From the IMG/VR virus record IMGVR_UViG_3300025161_000004, positions 1 through 64,000 of that record: DNA of 64,000 nucleotides. One strand, given 5' to 3'. Each line of letters opens with the position of its first letter. Within the stretch, counting starts at the first letter, position 1. The notes beneath the pieces were generated by a model, which was not told the origin of the DNA, did not search any database, and was given only the letters and a program-made list of their open reading frames with translations. Made by a program: the position numbers and the translations under genes. Positions 12,335 to 20,477 of this stretch are shown one piece after another.

Positions 12335-12500
12335 AAAATTTATTTTTTTATTTATGGTAATTCAATAATTATAATATCAACACAATTCAAGAGAATTCAT
12401 TTATTCAAATTCAACATAATATGTCTAAAATTTTAACACTCACATTAGTGTGATATTATAATTAGTTAGTGAACTACCCACCCACGCCAAAGGCGATGGG

Positions 12501-13190
12501 TTAGGCTTCGGAAGTCATCACTCCAAGTAAATAATACCTACGTTTAATGTGAGATATTTTACCAGAACACAAACGAGAAATAGAACCAATGGAAACACTT
12601 AGTTTATCAGCAGCATCAACAACCCCGTCACAAACTAATTTCAAAGATTTTTCTTTGTCGAATATTTCTATTTGCTTTTTGTTCATTTTTCTCCCTTTCA
12701 TTATTCTTCTCATTTTTTCTGAATGTCCTTTTGGCATCTTTTTCCCTTTATTCCAAGATGGTTTCCCTCTATTAGCATCTCCTATTTTCTTTTTTGTTTC
12801 GTCAGATAACTTAAGCCCTTTATGTGACTCTATATTAGCAATTCTTTGCTTTTCTGTATATTTGCCTGTTCTTGATTTAGCAATCTTTTTCTTTGTAAGT
12901 TCTGACATTCTACCTTTGTTTGTGCCTCCTAAGTCTAAATTATACCCATTAGGTGATAAACAATCGTATTTTGATATAAAATCTCTTTCCAGTTCATTAA
13001 GTTTATCAAGACAACTAATGTTGTCAACTAAAATAGTTTTTACAAAGTTATCTTTGCCATATTTTTTCAATGCATTTTTAAAAGCAATTCCGCTTCCAAG
13101 ATATGTATTTCTATCTCTGTCATTTATACTTTGCCCAATATACTTTTTACCATTTACGAGGCAAGTTGTTAAATATATGTATCCTTTCAT
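12501..13190 (-). CDS. GIY-YIG homing endonuclease with NUMOD3 repeats and a C-terminal HTH (Seg-like)
   Basis: GYIY, YIGQS, YLGSG and GYNL. NUMOD3-like SELTKKKIAKS and SDETKKKIGDANRGKPSWNKG. Confidence 0.92.
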   Translation of the reverse strand: MKGYIYLTTCLVNGKKYIGQSINDRDRNTYLGSGIAFKNALKKYGKDNFVKTILVDNISCLDKLNELERDFISKYDCLSPNGYNLDLGGTNKGRMSELTKKKIAKSRTGKYTEKQRIANIESHKGLKLSDETKKKIGDANRGKPSWNKGKKMPKGHSEKMRRIMKGRKMNKKQIEIFDKEKSLKLVCDGVVDAADKLSVSIGSISRLCSGKISHIKRRYYLLGVMTSEA

Positions 13191-13860: not shown

Positions 13861-15939
13861 CTAAAATTCGAATAATGGGATGCCTATAGTATAAGATTTC
13901 ATTTGATATGTGAAATCTTTTAGTATCTCATCAATATATTCACCAATCATCATTTCATCATATACACAAAGAGAATTATCATCTACATCTTTCCATTTAC
14001 CATGTAAAGTATGATCTCTTTCAATTATAGATGCTAATTTTGTTACTGCTTGCTCTCTTACTACAAGCCTGTTCACAAACTTGTGTGCGTGTTCATCTAA
14101 TTTACTCCACTCATATAGGTCGCAATAATACTTAGGTCTTAACTTGATTCTTTCAAGTTCTTCATGTAATAGTTTTTTTGCTATGTCGTTGTACATATTT
14201 ATTATATTTTTTTCTTTATCGTTAAGGTTGTTTAACGTTGCAATATATTTACTGTTAAATAAACTCGCAAATATTTTTTTAGAAAAATTTAATTCGTGTG
14301 CATCATTTTTAAAACCATAAAAAATATTACCTTTGAAGGTAGTCAGTTCAGATATTTTGATTTTATGATGAAATCTATTACTAGTGAAGTTAGTTGTTAG
14401 AACTGAGATGGTACTATTACTTTTTTTTAGAATTTTTTTTGTTATGTTTTTATTACAAAAAAATTCATCAGGAACTACAATATCATCGTACGCCTTAACA
14501 TGTACTTTTATGATATTTGTTAATTCATTAAAAAGTGCAATTATTTCATTCTCTATTGCAGAGGTTAATGACTTAACATCACAATTAACATGTTTCAAAT
14601 ATGCTATTATAATGTTATCTTTATTACTATAATCATATTTTGGTTTCAAAATATAGAAACATTCATATTTATGTTTCAGGTATGTTTGCTTAATTAGTTT
14701 ACTATTAAAGTTCAGTCCAGTACGGAAAATATTTTCTTTTGTTAGAATATCAAAATATGAACCATTAAAAATTGTCGAATTATTACTGAATTTGTTTGGT
14801 TTTATACCATATAATTTATAGCTATAAAATATGAGAACTAATGATTCATTTTTTATTGTTGATTTTATGTTATTATATGGAAATTTAGTTAGTGAAATTT
14901 TATCTTGATTACTGAATATTTTACCAAGAAATATTGAATTTGTTGGGGTAATTTTTAATTCAAATTGTTTTTGTTTGAATTTCAAATAATCAGTAATGGT
15001 TTTAATATCACCACATTGAGCAACATAAAGATCTATTAATTCTTGTCTAACTTCATGTAGTTTATTCTTTAAAAATTCAATTGTTTCATCGGAATATTCG
15101 ACTGCCTCTCTATTCATCGTAACATTGATATCGCCAATATTTGCTTTAATAGCAACAGGAACTTGCCAGTCAGGTGCGTATAAACCTAACGCATTATAAT
15201 CAATTGGATACGCTACGTGACCCAAACAAATGTGAATATTATCGTAAAGATCACTTCCACGGTATAAAAAGGTATTGCCATGATGAATGGTATAATTGTT
15301 GATATTTGGCATGTGATGGTCAAAACCTTCAAAAATAATATTATCAAAATAGTATAGTTGTTTCTTAATTTCACTCAAAAATCTCCCTAAATCGCCAGAA
15401 GCAATGGTAACTTTAACTTCAGTACCATTTCTTTCGGTGGTTTCGGTTTGTTTAATTAATTCGATTTCTGGTGATGTTTCTCCTGCGTAAATGTTGTAAA
15501 AATACTCGATACCATCAACTCTTGTTTTTACAAAAAATGATTGAGTATCGTATGCCAAGGGAGTTTTAGAACCGATACCAAATGCTCCGAATTGTTCATT
15601 GGTTTGTCGTTTAGTCGATTCAAACAGTACTCCATAAACCTCTTCTATTGTTTGAGGAGACATACCAGTACCCTTATCAATAAATGAAATTGTATATCCA
15701 GTAGACTCTTTATTAAGACGTATTATAATTGGATATTTCACTCCTGCAGCCACATGTGAATCATAGCAATTTGAGGTTAATTCTCTAATAATACTACCAA
15801 TGATGTTCGAATATAGGTTTTTTGTGTATGACCTAAAAATCATCATCTGGGCATTATCACTTAATCGAACTTTGATTTTTCTTTGAGTGTTAATAGATTG
15901 AATATCAGCAGTATTAAGTAAATCAGTTTCTAATTTCAT
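13861..15939 (-). CDS. rIIA: rIIA-like protein (N-terminal GHKL/HATPase domain)
   Basis: GHKL motifs LYSN..IRELTSNCYDSH, DKGTGMS, STK and GAFGIGSK, typical of phage rIIA. Confidence 0.78.
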   Translation of the reverse strand: MKLETDLLNTADIQSINTQRKIKVRLSDNAQMMIFRSYTKNLYSNIIGSIIRELTSNCYDSHVAAGVKYPIIIRLNKESTGYTISFIDKGTGMSPQTIEEVYGVLFESTKRQTNEQFGAFGIGSKTPLAYDTQSFFVKTRVDGIEYFYNIYAGETSPEIELIKQTETTERNGTEVKVTIASGDLGRFLSEIKKQLYYFDNIIFEGFDHHMPNINNYTIHHGNTFLYRGSDLYDNIHICLGHVAYPIDYNALGLYAPDWQVPVAIKANIGDINVTMNREAVEYSDETIEFLKNKLHEVRQELIDLYVAQCGDIKTITDYLKFKQKQFELKITPTNSIFLGKIFSNQDKISLTKFPYNNIKSTIKNESLVLIFYSYKLYGIKPNKFSNNSTIFNGSYFDILTKENIFRTGLNFNSKLIKQTYLKHKYECFYILKPKYDYSNKDNIIIAYLKHVNCDVKSLTSAIENEIIALFNELTNIIKVHVKAYDDIVVPDEFFCNKNITKKILKKSNSTISVLTTNFTSNRFHHKIKISELTTFKGNIFYGFKNDAHELNFSKKIFASLFNSKYIATLNNLNDKEKNIINMYNDIAKKLLHEELERIKLRPKYYCDLYEWSKLDEHAHKFVNRLVVREQAVTKLASIIERDHTLHGKWKDVDDNSLCVYDEMMIGEYIDEILKDFTYQMKSYTIGIPLFEF

Positions 15940-16094: not shown

Positions 16095-16832
16095 ATGCCT
16101 AGAAATAAAAAAATTATTCCAGAACCTAATTACAATATTGACCATACATTAAAAGCAAAATCCGAAGATCCATTATATCATTTGCACGAATATGACGTTG
16201 ATTTGAAATCAAATCATATATATTTAATGGGTATTGAAACATACAATCAAGGAAATGGTCTGGAAGGTAGTGAACCTGGGATTGAATATATTATTGCTAA
16301 TAGATTTATACGTAATTTCAATATGCTAATGCGAGTTAATCCAAATGTACCCATAGTAATACATATGAAAACATGTGGTGGTTCTTGGGAAGAAGGGATG
16401 GCTATTTACGATACAATAAAATCATGTCCTTGGTTTGTTACCATTTTAAATTATACTCATGCCAGATCAATGTCATCTATAATATTTCAAGCAGCAAATA
16501 AGCGTGTCATGATGCCTAATAGTTCATTTATGTTTCATGATGGCATTTTCAGCATTCATGGGACTTTAAAACAAGTTAAATCTGCAATTGCTTTCAACAA
16601 ACATGCCGATAAAACCATGCTTGATATATATGCTAATATGATGAATATTACTGGTGAGTTTAAAGGTCAAGGTATTAGTAAAATAAAATCTTGGTTAAGA
16701 AACCAAATGGATAAAAAGGAAGATGTATATTTAACTGCACCAGAAGCAGTTAGACTTGGACTTGCTGATGAAGTGTTTAATTACGACTGGTCAAGTCTTA
16801 CCTCATATAATGAAGAACAAAAGAGTAGGTAG
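16095..16832 (+). CDS. clpP: ClpP-like serine protease
   Basis: TCGGS..EG, ARSMSS (catalytic Ser), FMFHD and EAVRLGLADEV. Confidence 0.85.
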   Translation: MPRNKKIIPEPNYNIDHTLKAKSEDPLYHLHEYDVDLKSNHIYLMGIETYNQGNGLEGSEPGIEYIIANRFIRNFNMLMRVNPNVPIVIHMKTCGGSWEEGMAIYDTIKSCPWFVTILNYTHARSMSSIIFQAANKRVMMPNSSFMFHDGIFSIHGTLKQVKSAIAFNKHADKTMLDIYANMMNITGEFKGQGISKIKSWLRNQMDKKEDVYLTAPEAVRLGLADEVFNYDWSSLTSYNEEQKSR

Positions 16833-16833
16833 C

Positions 16834-17049
16834 TTATTCTGGAAGCTCAATTTCCTTCACAAATTTTGTCAATCTTTCAATCTTAAATTTGGATCTTACA
16901 ATAAGATCATGAGGTATATTTTTTTTCTTTGCGAATCGATAACACATTTCTCTCCATTTCATGGGTAGGTTAGTAAATGCGATAGTTTCGGTTAATTCTT
17001 CTTTCATTGATTTTGATTTCATTTCCTTTTGTGGTTTGAATTTGAGCAA
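16834..17049 (-). CDS. hypothetical protein
   Basis: Short ORF. Confidence 0.45.
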   Translation of the reverse strand: MLKFKPQKEMKSKSMKEELTETIAFTNLPMKWREMCYRFAKKKNIPHDLIVRSKFKIERLTKFVKEIELPE

Positions 17050-17228
17050 CTCTCATCATGTGTCATTGTAAAATACGCACCTCTTTTTGCGATAACATAG
17101 AGATGATTATTCCAAATTTTGGATGTGAAAGTAATTTCGTCTGGAGTATTATTCATTGATGTGAATATTACAATTGATAATATCCCTAATAATAGTAGTG
17201 TTAGTTTGTTTTTAAAGATAGTTTTCAT
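17019..17228 (-). CDS. small secreted or membrane protein
   Basis: MKTIFKNKLTLLLLG signal-like start. The in-frame extension to 17255 lies within the IS left end. Confidence 0.6.
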   Translation of the reverse strand: MKTIFKNKLTLLLLGILSIVIFTSMNNTPDEITFTSKIWNNHLYVIAKRGAYFTMTHDESCSNSNHKRK

Positions 17229-17299
17229 TTTTATATTTTGGAGCGTAAAACCCATCGGTCTTTAGCCGATGGGATATAAGCGACAAATGGAGTGATGAT

Positions 17300-17710
17300 T
17301 TAACCTTGATTTAATATATATTGACGTATGGTTTCTGGTGAAGCCTCACCAATTGAACAGGCAAAATAACCATCAGACCAAAATGTTTTCTCAACCCAAA
17401 ATTGATTTAGCAAGAACTGACGATGCATACGCCAGATGTGAAACGTTGACTCTTGTTTTAACTTACGAACAATGGAACTGATTGACAACCTTGGAATGTA
17501 TTTAATAAGGAAGTGAATATGATTTACATCAGACTCCATTATCTCAATCTCAAAATCTGACCCATCAGATATGTTTTGAAGAAGTTGCTTCATATCATCA
17601 TTTAATTGACCAACCAGAAGTGGTTTGCGATATTTAACAGCAAAGATGATATGTGCTTTTAAATAGTGTTTTGAGCGATTTGTTGATGTGTAATTTGATT
17701 TTTTTGGCAT
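17300..17710 (-). CDS. tnpA: IS200/IS605 Y1 (HUH) transposase
   Basis: HIIFAVKYRK, HUH motif NHIH, FWSDGYF and catalytic Y in IRQYILNQ. Confidence 0.95.
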   Translation of the reverse strand: MPKKSNYTSTNRSKHYLKAHIIFAVKYRKPLLVGQLNDDMKQLLQNISDGSDFEIEIMESDVNHIHFLIKYIPRLSISSIVRKLKQESTFHIWRMHRQFLLNQFWVEKTFWSDGYFACSIGEASPETIRQYILNQG

Positions 17711-17796
17711 AATTAAGATTTTTTGTAAAAGTTTCCACCAAAAACAAACTTTTACAAAAAATTCGACTTGAAATGTGGAAAAATCATTTTTTTTCT

Positions 17797-17807
17797 AAGT
17801 ATTTATA
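17797..17807 (+). promoter_or_regulatory. phage late-type promoter motif AAGTATTTATA inside the IS
   Basis: The same motif precedes many structural and lysis genes in the window. Confidence 0.6.
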
Positions 17808-17838
17808 GATATAACATTTCATCTATAATCGTAAAGGA

Positions 17839-18348
17839 GTGGATTTAAAAAAGTACATAAGAAAAATAATCAGAGAAGAGTTCTTGAAAGAAGATGTTGG
17901 TGGTTTGGTATTATACCATGCCTCAAATGAATTGTTTGATAAATTTGAACTTAAGAAAGGGTATAGAACACATCTTTTTTCGGTTGAATTGACCGATTCT
18001 TATGCAATATTTTTAACTCCAGATGTGGAGGCAGCAAAGCAGTTTGGTGAAAAATATCTATATAAATGTAAAATCCATCCAAAGAGAACATTGGATTGGA
18101 GAGAATATTTAGACGTGAGAAGTTATGAGTGGCTTAAAAAGCAATTTGGGAATATCATCCCTTGGAGTGCAAGTGAATATTGGATGCTCTTGGATGATAA
18201 ACGTGTAATTGATTATTTACATCATAGAGGAATAGATTGTGTTATAATTAGTGAGATAGGTGAACACGACCAATTTGATACATATGCAATGCTTAATCCA
18301 AATGATATTGAAATTATTGAGGTGATTGATTTGAAAAAAAAAATTTGA
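17839..18348 (+). CDS. ADP-ribosyltransferase-like (ART-PolyVal-like) cargo protein with a phage leader sequence
   Basis: LYHAS..FDKF, AIFLTPD..AAKQFG, YLYKC and YAMLNPNDI. N-terminal MDLKKYIRKIIREEFLKE. Confidence 0.6.
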   Translation: MDLKKYIRKIIREEFLKEDVGGLVLYHASNELFDKFELKKGYRTHLFSVELTDSYAIFLTPDVEAAKQFGEKYLYKCKIHPKRTLDWREYLDVRSYEWLKKQFGNIIPWSASEYWMLLDDKRVIDYLHHRGIDCVIISEIGEHDQFDTYAMLNPNDIEIIEVIDLKKKI

Positions 18349-18830
18349 GTGAAAATCAATCTTCATCAAATCAAGAATATATTGCATATCACTCAAGTAA
18401 TTCAAAAATTGATGAGTTTGATTTTGATAAAATTGAATTAAAACCAAATTCTTCTACAAGAATTGATGGAATATTTTTTAGCAACATCCCACAAACATCT
18501 TGGGGTGATTATATCTATAAAGTAAAATTAATTTCGCAAAATCCAGCAATATTTGATTTAAGTAAAAGTAGATTTGATAGTTTAGGTGTTCAAGAAGCAT
18601 TTGATGCATTATTACGTGGCGATACATCATATATTATTGAAGACTTGGTTGAATATGGTGGTATAGAACAGGAAGATGCTGAAAATTTAGCTGAAAAATG
18701 GAGACGTTCTGATTTGATTGTTATTACAAACCAAGTGTATGGAAAACATGATACTGAATATATTGTGCCAGACCCATATTACAATGGAAAGTCTGCTCAA
18801 ATAATTAATTTGGGTTTAATTGAAAAATAA
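18345..18830 (+). CDS. second ART-PolyVal-like cargo domain, possibly fused to the upstream ORF by a -1 frameshift
   Basis: AYHSS..IDEFDF, GIFFS, WGDYIYKVKL...NP and EYIV. TTG start immediately after an A10 tract. Confidence 0.6.
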   Translation: MSENQSSSNQEYIAYHSSNSKIDEFDFDKIELKPNSSTRIDGIFFSNIPQTSWGDYIYKVKLISQNPAIFDLSKSRFDSLGVQEAFDALLRGDTSYIIEDLVEYGGIEQEDAENLAEKWRRSDLIVITNQVYGKHDTEYIVPDPYYNGKSAQIINLGLIEK

Positions 18831-19979
18831 ATGTTAAAGGCATATAAATATCGCATATTTCCAACAGAAGAGCAACAAGGTCTTCTTGCCAACATATTTG
18901 GTCAAACCAGATTTGTTTACAATCTTGGGCTGGAAACCAAAATATCTGCTTATGCTGGAAACAAAACAAACATTGATTGCTTTGACCTAATTAAACAGGT
19001 GAAGGAGCTGAAAGATACCGAATGTCCTTGGCTCAAGGAAGCACCATCACAGGCTTTACAAATGGCACTCAGAAACCTTGATAATGCATACACCAACTTC
19101 TTTAAGGGAAAAGGATTTCCAAAGTTTAAGAACAAACATGGAAAACAATCATTTCAGTTGCCACAAGGTGTGTTCTTATCAGAAGATAACAAACAAATAT
19201 TCATTCCAAAGCTTAAATTCGTTGGAATTGATTTGCATAGAGAATTTAAAGGCGATATTAAAACAGTTACTGTAAGCAGAACAGTAACAAACAAATATTT
19301 CGTGTCAATTTTGGTTGACAACAAACAGGAATTACCAAAGAAGAAACCAATAACAGAACAATCTGCTGTTGGGATTGACCTTGGGATAAAAGATTTTGCA
19401 ATAACATCAGATGGAAAGAAATTCGAGAACAAAGATTTCTTTAAATCTACAATGCAAAAATTAAGAGTAGCACAACGCTCTCTCGCAAGAAAGCAAAAGG
19501 GAAGCAATTATTATAAACAACAAAAACTCGTTGTTGCCTTGCTTCATGAAAAGGTGAAGAATCAAAGACAAGATTATCTTCACAAGATAAGTAAATACCT
19601 TGTTGATAATTATGATACTATTTGTCTTGAGGACTTATCTGTGAAGAACATGGTTAAAAACCACTGCCTTGCAAGAGCAATAAGTGATATGGGTTGGAGA
19701 GAATTCAGAACAATGTTGGAATATAAAGCTGAGTGGCAAGGAAAAAATCTATCAGTAATTGGTAGATTCGAGCCATCAAGCAAGACTTGCAATTGTTGTG
19801 GATATATCAACAAAGAATTGACTCTTAATGATAGGGAGTGGACATGCAAAGGTTGTAATACCAAACATGACCGTGATGTTAATGCATCAATAAATATTAA
19901 AAATTTCGGGCTTAGGAACAAGTCCAGCGTTGCTCAAAGTGATGGGATACCATGTGCTTGCAACGTAGAAGCCCATTAG
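18831..19979 (+). CDS. tnpB: RNA-guided endonuclease TnpB
   Basis: KAYKYRIFPT HTH, RuvC-I GIDLG, RuvC-II CLEDL, Zn finger CNCCG..CKGC and RuvC-III DRDVNA, all intact. Confidence 0.97.
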   Translation: MLKAYKYRIFPTEEQQGLLANIFGQTRFVYNLGLETKISAYAGNKTNIDCFDLIKQVKELKDTECPWLKEAPSQALQMALRNLDNAYTNFFKGKGFPKFKNKHGKQSFQLPQGVFLSEDNKQIFIPKLKFVGIDLHREFKGDIKTVTVSRTVTNKYFVSILVDNKQELPKKKPITEQSAVGIDLGIKDFAITSDGKKFENKDFFKSTMQKLRVAQRSLARKQKGSNYYKQQKLVVALLHEKVKNQRQDYLHKISKYLVDNYDTICLEDLSVKNMVKNHCLARAISDMGWREFRTMLEYKAEWQGKNLSVIGRFEPSSKTCNCCGYINKELTLNDREWTCKGCNTKHDRDVNASINIKNFGLRNKSSVAQSDGIPCACNVEAH

Positions 19980-20020
19980 TCTTTAGCTAATGGGTAGTTC
20001 ACTGAGTTCATATTATGGTT
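19890..20020 (+). ncRNA. TnpB omega/reRNA scaffold plus guide (guide from the right flank, 20003 onward)
   Basis: Stems gggctt/aagtcc, cgttgc/gcaacg and the right-end hairpin ending TCAC. The 5' boundary is approximate. Confidence 0.6.
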
Positions 20021-20227
20021 TTAAGACAACATTAGATACTATCTTATTCGCTAGTTTTATCTTTTTTTTGTTTAAATTTTCTACTTTCTAGTTTGTTTTT
20101 TTGTTTCTTTTTATCAAGAACAATCATTGGTTTAACTTTATGGGTAGTTTCTCTCATGACCTTTCTCATCATCTTGAGTCTATCCATATTAGTTATTTTA
20201 TTTTTCTTTGATTTTGTCATACAGTAG

Positions 20228-20256
20228 ATTATACGAATTACTAATGTATTTGGTTA
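20228..20256 (-). promoter_or_regulatory. putative phage ECF-sigma promoter TAAC-N17-CGTATAAT
   Basis: Exact motif with 17-nt spacer. Confidence 0.6.
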
Positions 20257-20477
20257 GATCTTATGTATTTTTCTCTCAGATTATATATTTCAATAGTTAA
20301 TTTTCTAATTTCTTCATAAAGGTGCTCTAATCCAGAATCGTTATTTTTAATTAATATTGGCACTCTACGCTGAAGCGTCACTTTTAATTCCTCCTTTTCT
20401 TTTATTTGGTTTAATAGTGTGGTTATTTCTTTTTCACTCCTTTTCATCATTAACAAATTTAGTTTTTTTATTGACAT
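20241..20477 (-). CDS. hypothetical protein
   Basis: Short ORF in an operon-like run. Confidence 0.5.
   Translation of the reverse strand: MSIKKLNLLMMKRSEKEITTLLNQIKEKEELKVTLQRRVPILIKNNDSGLEHLYEEIRKLTIEIYNLREKYIRSNQIH

Follow-up and report, generated by a model that had tools for sequence, protein, structure and literature searches.

A likely exchangeable slot with an ADP-ribosyltransferase-like gene in an IS605-type transposon of a large phage contig

IS200/IS605 elements are textbook minimal transposons, and one viral contig raises the question of what else such an element may carry and how the extra gene came to be there. The window analysed here is a stretch of 64,000 nucleotides, the first 64 kb of IMG/VR contig IMGVR_UViG_3300025161_000004 (full contig 246,768 bp), and the contig resembles a large AT-rich phage. 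At 17235-20002 the window contains a transposase gene (tnpA) together with a gene for an RNA-guided nuclease (tnpB), in divergent orientation. The classical picture of the family has only tnpA and tnpB within the ends; here about 1 kb of coding cargo (17839-18830) lies there too. Is this one transposon with a passenger, or transposon fragments that happen to flank phage genes, and what does the passenger encode? We consider it likely that the locus is a complete IS605-type transposon of a viral and metagenome lineage, and that it has an exchangeable slot, occupied here by a two-domain gene of ADP-ribosyltransferase (ART) type behind the element's own tnpB promoter.

Judged by its sequence, 17235-20002 is one complete IS200/IS605-family element of the IS605 type with divergent tnpA and tnpB, and it is probably active. 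Support for transposition and RNA-guided cleavage is indirect and comes from the several insertion sites. The limits are those given by an earlier reading of the bare sequence (the original prediction), and the left-end and right-end junctions of related copies agree with them. Both transposon genes are intact and divergent and the cargo lies inside both ends, again as first described. The parts of the element are listed in Table 1. The HUH motif (HIHFLI) and catalytic tyrosine (IRQYI) of TnpA align with the ISDra2 and ISHp608 TnpA structures (2xm3, 2a6m), and the protein is 92-98% identical to its counterparts in sister copies. Residues 3-360 of TnpB align with ISDra2 TnpB (E=1e-71), and TnpB keeps the RuvC D/E/D residues (in GIDLG, LEDL and HDRD) as well as a CxxC...CxxC zinc finger. 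The left-end and right-end hairpins lie on the same (plus) strand and share the loop TCTTTAG, and their stems are kept by compensatory changes in sister copies. The left end is conserved in six other copies (L009, L011, L056, L074, L076, L078), including L056, whose stem is one of those kept in this way. At dozens of related loci the right end always closes in ...GGGTAGTTCAC and is followed by unrelated sequence. Subterminal palindromes on one strand are present, as is usual for IS200/IS605, and inverted terminal repeats are absent. TTTAT is not repeated after the right end, which means that there is no target duplication. The original prediction had placed a TTAT target, or transposon-associated motif (TAM), at the left end. 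The site is there, but the conserved target is longer, TTTAT, at eight left-end junctions. The 3' part of tnpB and the right end together form a region that resembles an omega RNA. RNAalifold predicts 39 pairs across 16 related elements, and 19 of the 39 are still paired after changes on both sides. This covariation is as expected for an omega-RNA scaffold under selection within coding sequence. An Rfam search matched no family and returned two chance-level hits only. The palindrome that separates tnpA from the cargo promoter may act as an operator, or as a terminator in both directions.

Table 1. Positions in the window of the transposon, its parts and the sequence next to it (ORF, open reading frame; aa, amino acids).
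Feature	Positions	Strand	Description
Small ORF	17019-17228	-	ATG at 17226-17228, 6 nt from the left end of the element; N-terminus signal-peptide-like or transmembrane
Target	17230-17234	+	TTTAT, presumed TnpB TAM; directly 5' of the left end; constant at 8 independent insertion sites with unrelated upstream sequence
Left end	17235-17299	+	Subterminal hairpin CCCATCGG-TCTTTAG-CCGATGGG at 17251-17273
tnpA	17300-17710	-	Y1 (HUH) transposase, 136 aa, intact; Pfam Y1_Tnp, E=2.3e-32
Palindrome	17721-17761		TTTTTTGTAAAAGTTT-N-AAACTTTTACAAAAAA, 16-bp arms; between tnpA and the cargo promoter; nearly invariant across the four element copies compared
32-bp insertion	17768-17799	+	Specific to this lineage within the element; its last 3 bases (AAG) complete AAGTATTTATA
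Promoter-like block	17797-17829	+	AAGTATTTATA at 17797-17807; overlapping sigma-70-like TTTATA-N16-TATAAT at 17802-17829
Start of cargo gene	17839-17879	+	MDLKKYIRKIIREE; conserved element DNA encoding the N-terminal leader; last codon ends at 17880
Cargo ORF1	17839-18348	+	169 aa, GTG start; ART-PolyVal/AcrIF11-like ADP-ribosyltransferase fold (predicted)
A10 run	18334-18343	+	One base short here relative to contigs of X4, X14 and X20; splits the cargo gene
Cargo ORF2	18345-18830	+	161 aa, TTG start inside the ORF1 stop codon; second, more distant ART-like domain (predicted)
tnpB	18831-19979	+	RNA-guided nuclease, 382 aa, intact; Pfam HTH_OrfB, OrfB_IS605 and TNB domains
Omega-RNA-like region	19838-20002	+	Structured; overlaps the tnpB 3' end and the right end
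Right end	19972-20002	+	Hairpin CCCATTAG-TCTTTAG-CTAATGGG (19972-19994), then TAGTTCAC; cleavage end 20002 (GTTCAC)
Right flank	20003-20022	+	Would serve as omega-RNA guide by read-through, by analogy with the ISDra2/IS605 mechanism

The case for a slot comes from sister copies. Three viral contigs (L009, L011 and L056) carry elements whose TnpB is 91-95% and whose TnpA is 92-97% identical to the proteins of the window. Their DNA matches the window in two places only, 17228-17879 (82-87%) and 18823-20003 (86-88%). Their flanks are unrelated to those of the window and to one another; divergence sets in before TTTAT and after GTTCAC at eight or more independent sites. Because DNA homology is found only on the two sides of the cargo and the contents differ, the interval is best described as a slot that holds exchangeable genes. 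The window and the contigs of three sequencing runs (X4, X14, X20) have ORF1 and ORF2 in the slot. A 185-aa protein takes this place in L009, L056 and L073, and a 190-aa ART-like protein related to ORF1 (hhalign E=1.3e-6) in L011, L071 and L076, while L078 has a 57-aa ORF that lacks the leader described below. The cargo has been lost altogether from three deletion derivatives (L072, L074, L077), whose promoter block is followed at once by tnpB sequence, from either the middle or the end of the gene. The original prediction had called for a search for the same ends with other cargo, or with none, in other phages; copies with other cargo and deletion derivatives without it were found.

Contigs from other samples show the element with its cargo in other surroundings. 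Assembled contigs of four runs (two wastewater, one hot-spring and one metatranscriptome) were compared with 16800-20400. The same element with the same cargo, 90-100% identical, is present in X4, X14 and X20, which span wastewater, hot-spring and metatranscriptome assemblies; X3 contigs hold short stretches plus the 3' part of tnpB with the right end only. The flanks of the window itself have zero depth in all four runs. Contigs depart from the window precisely in front of 17230 and behind 20002/20003 and continue in unrelated sequence; the right flanks are of at least five kinds. Since the same element and cargo occur with other flanks in other samples, they move as a unit. In L062, the nearest relative phage found (protease 86% identical), element and cargo are both missing between the protease gene and the small genes downstream; its locus is rearranged and so yields no clean empty site. 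TnpB of this lineage, at 89% identity or more, was found in viral and metagenome contigs only, and most other tnpB relatives in viral contigs (80% identity or less) are tnpB-only. TnpB relatives in cellular genomes are at most 73% identical and lie on short contigs of metagenome-assembled genomes (MAGs), and no host was identified from them. The nearest cellular relative with an adjoining tnpA (L081, a Methanobacteriota MAG, TnpB 49% identical) has a tnpA-tnpB gap of 60 bp and no cargo. A megablast search of GenBank phages with the region gave no near-identical record. As a separate observation, the summed contig depth of run X4 over 19946-20066 is about 1,400, compared with 10-35 elsewhere in the element, which implies that the wastewater community sampled there contains such right ends in a great many copies.

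The cargo is preceded by a promoter-like block whose sigma-70-like site agrees at 10 of 12 positions. The tnpB-only element L035 has a homologous block, AGTATTTATAGATA...ATCTATAA, directly before tnpB. It follows that what precedes the cargo is a tnpB promoter region belonging to the element, and that the cargo has been placed between this promoter and tnpB. The interval from cargo to tnpB has no terminator-like site, and the TAA of the cargo (18828-18830) directly abuts the tnpB ATG at 18831, as originally described; the lack of a terminator is consistent with co-transcription. The 11-mer AAGTATTTATA, with one mismatch allowed, is not enriched (17 found, 12 expected). Its core 10-mer, AGTATTTATA, occurs exactly eight times (17798, 27160, 31760, 33922, 35426, 38988, 48784 and 52012) against 1.04 expected, a count reached in none of 100 shuffles, and is often followed by GA(T/A)A. 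An ORF starts within about 120 nt downstream on the same strand at seven of these eight sites. The genes behind the core motif include the endolysin gene, a primase operon and a RuvC-like resolvase operon, and the head protease gene has the motif with one mismatch. The sequence before the cargo had been predicted to be a motif of this phage that precedes its structural genes. The enrichment of the core bears out the first half of this claim, but specificity for late or structural genes does not hold, and a late/structural reading was rejected on the sites before the primase and RuvC-like resolvase operons. AGTATTTATA is probably a phage promoter element of unassigned class. Sister copies carry CTATTTACAGATA in the place of the motif, and the perfect AAGTATTTATA match in the window was created by the 32-bp insertion together with a C-to-T change. 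The insertion is present in the window and X4, and is absent from L009, L011, L056, L078 and the hot-spring contigs of X14 (joint 17767->17800). The two changes are compatible with an adaptation of the element's promoter to this phage.

What does the slot of the window encode? The original prediction counted two cargo ORFs, which turn out to be halves of one gene. Behind 18333, X4 and X20 contigs contain one more A, and they read G for A at 18339; those of X14 contain one more G, behind 18335; in all three runs the additional base puts ORF1 and ORF2 into one frame, and the ORF2 frame is open from 18327. That the two belong to one gene accounts for two features of ORF2, the absence of an ATG and of the N-terminal leader of its homologues, which are about 17 residues longer and start with a leader such as MNKDMKLRKFIATTIREFLNEQ. 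On the sequences compared, the ancestral cargo is a single protein of about 330 residues with two ART-like domains. The base shortfall at the A10 run may be a real mutation, a slippage site or an assembly error. When viral contigs were searched for the in-frame junction of ORF1 and ORF2 found in the other samples, none matched.

The ART reading of the original prediction stands for ORF1, at the level of fold and of family; it stands less firmly for ORF2, which appears to be a distant ART-like relative. ORF1 has 19 homologues at 52-85% identity, and PF18760, the Pfam ART-PolyVal model, weakly matches 17 of the 21 aligned ORF1-family sequences (mostly family members; E<=0.1), with a best E-value of 8.8e-7. 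An AlphaFold model of ORF1 built on the family alignment has a mean predicted local distance difference test score (pLDDT) of 83, and its top Foldseek matches in the PDB are all of the ART fold (E=2.8e-4 to 1e-2). The best match is 6kyf, and others are MbcT, a cyanophage pre-ejectosome protein, diphtheria toxin and tankyrases. The entry 6kyf is AcrIF11 (identified via bioRxiv 10.1101/2024.08.26.609590). A sequence search of the PDB with the ORF1 family profile returned nothing meaningful. The family keeps Y26, H27, Y73, E139 and D144 invariant. For ART-PolyVal an active site of His-Tyr-Asp configuration has been described (PMC5512222), and AcrIF11 activity needs H/Y plus D/E residues (bioRxiv 10.1101/2024.08.26.609590). 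By the model and PMC5512222, H27, Y73 and D144 of ORF1 are candidates for the His-Tyr-Asp catalytic positions of an ART.

ORF2 has 92 homologues, mostly of 178 aa, with invariant H16, Y58 and E138, the last in a ...TEYIV motif. When aligned with the ORF1 family by hhalign it gives 68% probability and E=4.9e-5, over the N-terminal half only. An earlier profile comparison of ORF1 with ORF2, at 99.8% probability, was inflated because the alignment included ORF2 itself, and it has been withdrawn. By Atlas features ORF2 scores 0.95 to clusters with ART-PolyVal in 15-24% of members, and 0.93 to AcrIF11-family clusters. The AcrIF11 model (PF26151) gave no match in the copy of Pfam that was searched. 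The original prediction had also pointed to a YH.S / IF(L/F)(T/S) / (F/W)G..YK pattern shared by the two ORFs; the pattern is in both, but with slightly different spacing. The 185-aa cargo of the L009 type has other invariant residues, namely Y93-R94, G110-x-S112-W113 and E164-N165-E166 (YR, GxSW and ENE). Its model has a pLDDT of 91 and weak Foldseek matches to cholera toxin A1, PltA, TreX and ParT (E=0.17-0.6, template modelling (TM) score about 0.3); Pfam gave no match for it. Taken together, these features suggest that this cargo may be an R-S-ExE ADP-ribosyltransferase. Homologues of ORF1 and of the L009-type cargo also occur as ordinary stand-alone genes in phage contigs, some of them very large, with no transposon nearby.

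The boundary between element and cargo does not lie at the start codon. The first 14 cargo codons are within conserved element DNA, and homology to sister copies stops at 17879. The leader that these codons encode is common to the cargo of the window, L009, L011 and L056, and all four genes have a GTG or TTG start. A similar peptide, (K/D)LRKFIxTTIREYLNE(N/Q), heads stand-alone members of the ORF1, ORF2 and L009-cargo families. When the profiles of the ORF1 family and the L009-cargo family are compared, the leader alone aligns. Among the other proteins of the 64-kb window the leader was found in none besides ORF1. It is also N-terminal in L002 7550-7882, L033 633-1313, P0002, P0020, P0116 and P0119, which belong to phage-contig families that otherwise cannot be aligned. 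The leader is modelled as a detached N-terminal helix of lower confidence. In phage T4 a capsid-targeting sequence of 10 residues is the N-terminal signal of diverse internal proteins, and Alt is an ART packaged in the head (PMC9026906). ART-PolyVal domains have been predicted to be injected (PMC5512222). The leader described here may be a packaging or processing signal like the T4 sequence, a homology handle for cassette exchange, or both.

Several results weigh against a transposon with a functional ART-like cargo. ORF1 alone reaches only E=0.11 and 13.7 bits against PF18760, where the cut-off is 31.2, its Foldseek TM scores are only 0.43-0.50, and ORF2 has no match in Pfam. The cargo gene of the window is split, and the GTG or TTG start lacks a well-spaced Shine-Dalgarno sequence in all four leader-bearing copies; for these two reasons expression of the window copy is uncertain. 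Contigs from the RNA library cover 17794-19156 and not most of tnpA, which is suggestive but no proof of transcription. The evidence from other samples consists of assembled contigs rather than reads. An exact search of viral and metagenome contigs for the empty site (left flank, 0-14 nt and right flank) found no match, which leaves TTAT and TTTAT both as candidate left boundaries and recent activity as a presumption.

Other explanations have to be weighed alongside this one. It is extremely unlikely that an IS200-like tnpA element and a separate tnpB-only element flank ordinary phage genes by chance, as a composite or as nested fragments. Close ORF1 homologues do stand alone in phage contigs with no transposon near (L001, L002, L079), and the tnpB-only form is the usual one among viral tnpB relatives. 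However, the locus has one left end and one right end only, and ORF2 abuts tnpB and leaves no room for a second left end. Conserved element DNA extends into the cargo gene, and it borders the cargo on both sides in several independent copies. Other sites have the tnpA-slot-tnpB arrangement with other cargo, the whole unit recurs with other flanks, and L062 is without element and cargo alike. A two-element composite was rejected on these grounds. The original prediction had named cargo at this locus without transposon ends as the case that would speak for two fragments; L062, the closest relative found, has no cargo there, and the single element of the prediction stands. Could the single element simply hold a decaying passenger? 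In that event a captured gene was knocked out by the A10 frameshift, and the element, kept going by TnpA and TnpB alone, does the phage no good. Three other samples do have one base more than the window copy, ORF2 lacks the leader and can start only at a TTG within the stop codon of ORF1, and L072, L074 and L077 have lost their cargo by deletion. But apart from the shortfall both reading frames are open, with about 97-99% identity to the in-frame copies, and each half of the cargo is a complete domain with its invariant residues. In addition, the TTGA stop-start overlap would permit translational coupling, the A10 run would permit slippage, and an assembly error in this homopolymer is possible too. 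We consider decay of the passenger unlikely.

The remaining alternatives concern what the cargo does. It is rather improbable, in our estimate, that the cargo is something other than a strict ADP-ribosyltransferase, such as an NAD+ phosphorylase like MbcT and RES proteins, an ART that modifies nucleic acids, or a catalytically dead binding protein. MbcT (6fkg) and Xre-RES (9r35) are among the top structural matches of ORF1, the Pfam ART scores are below threshold, and the acidic residue is placed differently in the two halves (D144 in ORF1, E138 in ORF2). Against this, the best structural match of ORF1 is AcrIF11, and the invariant H27, Y and D144 fit both the H-Y-D of ART-PolyVal (PMC5512222) and the residues that AcrIF11 needs (bioRxiv 10.1101/2024.08.26.609590). 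A further proposal makes the cargo an effector delivered by the virion. The leader would be a capsid-targeting or processing signal that is cut after (I/L)-x-E. Phage heads would package the ART and deliver it into the cell along with the DNA, and the stretch that encodes the leader would serve a second purpose, as a handle for recombination when cassettes are swapped. Several observations speak for it: the leader, as (K/D)LRKFIxTTIREYLNE or MDLKKYIRQIIKEE, stands at the front of three families that show no alignment beyond it, and also of proteins outside any transposon; it is modelled as a separate helix of lower confidence; it includes I-x-E and L-x-E triplets; and a cyanophage pre-ejectosome protein (9k3a_B) is among the structural matches of ORF1. 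T4 offers the precedent of a short capsid-targeting sequence and of Alt, a head-packaged ART (PMC9026906), and injection of ART-PolyVal domains has been predicted (PMC5512222). On the other side, no other protein in the 64 kb of the window has the leader, the head protease is ClpP/S49-like and unlike T4 gp21, and the L078 cargo has no leader. Late expression is not indicated either, with a sigma-70-like promoter block and a motif that also precedes replication genes. The proposal is built on the sequence resemblance of the leader, and we regard delivery in the virion as doubtful. A more far-reaching reading, which we put forward as speculation, treats this IS605 lineage as a cassette platform in which promoter and 14-codon leader accept different leader-bearing effector genes by recombination in the leader, the leader acts as a delivery signal for virion packaging or processing, and TnpB drives the spread through populations of co-infecting phages. 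If this were true, the cassettes would be mostly ADP-ribosyltransferases of unrelated clades, and the lineage would be a natural, integron-like gene drive for anti-host weapons among large phages.

The transposon with an exchangeable slot that we favour would work as follows. The complete unit would be carried to TTTAT sites by TnpA in the form of single-stranded DNA. Transcription through the right end would yield an omega RNA that guides TnpB to element-free alleles, recognised by TTTAT plus the right flank. TnpB would cut these alleles in sister or co-infecting phage genomes, and recombination would copy element and cargo into them. The cargo would be transcribed together with tnpB and may be an enzyme that uses NAD+ to modify a protein of the host, which would serve takeover of the cell or else counter-defence of the AcrIF11 kind. 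Its benefit to the phage would then offset the cost of the transposon. The main point of interest is that near-identical copies of one phage-borne lineage hold different effector-like genes behind their own promoter and before tnpB. If TnpB homing acts in phage co-infections as it does in bacteria, the cargo gains a built-in drive, and the element may repay the phage by help against the host. Three active fields meet at the locus: RNA-guided transposon nucleases, the contest of phages and bacteria over NAD+ and ADP-ribosylation, and the exchange of genes between large phages. For practical work it supplies a compact TnpB, for which a TTTAT TAM is predicted, several small ART-like proteins, which are possible agents against the defences of the host, and a conserved N-terminal leader common to unrelated phage proteins whose role is directly testable.

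The element sits in an intergenic spacer within a run of minus-strand genes. The gene neighbourhood in the window includes an endolysin, a primase, an SbcC-like protein, exonucleases and a ClpP-like head maturation protease (16095-16832). As originally noted, the ATG of the adjacent small ORF at 17228 is only 6 nt from the element. The insertion cuts this ORF off from its former upstream sequence; tnpA has the same orientation and could read into it. Two further observations concern other mobile DNA. A solo hairpin resembling an IS605-type right end lies at 12469-12510 (minus strand) and ends in GGGTAGTTCAC, with no tnpB there. It overlaps the 3' end of a 229-aa ORF (12501-13190, minus strand) in which GIY-YIG-like N-terminal motifs were read by eye. 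The site may be an IS605-type remnant whose nuclease gene was replaced, or one in which an endonuclease gene landed. In L062 (3144-6833) the homologue of the 692-aa gene of the window (13861-15939) is split by about 1.6 kb. This points to the insertion of mobile DNA, for instance an intron, an intein or an endonuclease gene.

How does the element compare with known systems? According to a 2023 survey, cargo had until then not been known from IS200 and IS605; the survey noted rare HTH, helicase and WhiA-like cargo (PMC10691335). IS605 elements are known with an accessory gene for an Arc ribbon-helix-helix repressor (bioRxiv 10.64898/2026.09.24.754181). The literature searched describes no phage lineage of IS605 in which effectors are exchanged in a slot, the cargo is an ART or the leader is encoded by the element. 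Like IS605, ISHp608 and ISDra2, the element has a Y1 HUH TnpA, a TnpB with RuvC triad and zinc finger, subterminal hairpins on the same strand, insertion 3' of a fixed pentanucleotide (TTGAT in ISDra2, TTTAT here), and a structured RNA over the tnpB 3' end and the right end; its divergent tnpA and tnpB are as in IS605. Unlike them, it has a tnpA-tnpB gap of about 1.1 kb with effector-like genes (about 60 bp in L081). It shares with the cargo-bearing IS605 elements (the Arc case and those of PMC10691335) an extra gene within the ends that is tied to the tnpB promoter region. It differs in that the extra genes are ART-like effectors and not regulators, that one slot has varying content, and that most of the genes have an element-encoded leader.

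The cargo resembles AcrIF11 and the ART-PolyVal/Tox-ART-HYD2 proteins in its predicted small stand-alone ART fold, with candidate catalytic residues (a His in strand 1, a Tyr and an acidic residue before strand 5), in its variable helical insert and in being encoded by phages and plasmids. In contrast to AcrIF11 and ART-PolyVal it has two domains in tandem and a leader, no significant match to the AcrIF11 model of Pfam, and ART-PolyVal matches below the cut-off. With the internal-protein locus of T4 (IPI-III, Alt) it has in common a short conserved peptide at the N-terminus of small, rapidly evolving proteins that are unrelated beyond it. It differs in the type of head protease and in the place of the cassette, which is a transposon and not a fixed phage locus, and for its cargo packaging and cleavage are a proposal. 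The element also recalls the free-standing homing endonuclease genes (HEGs) of phages and their co-conversion 'HEG islands' (PMC13565253), where the nuclease would cut element-less alleles and repair would copy the linked genes into the genomes of co-infecting phages; it departs from them in its RNA-guided TnpB, its discrete ends and its true transposase. The structure of the locus is that of IS200/IS605 in all respects except the restriction to tnpA and tnpB, and the probable exchangeable effector slot is what sets it apart.

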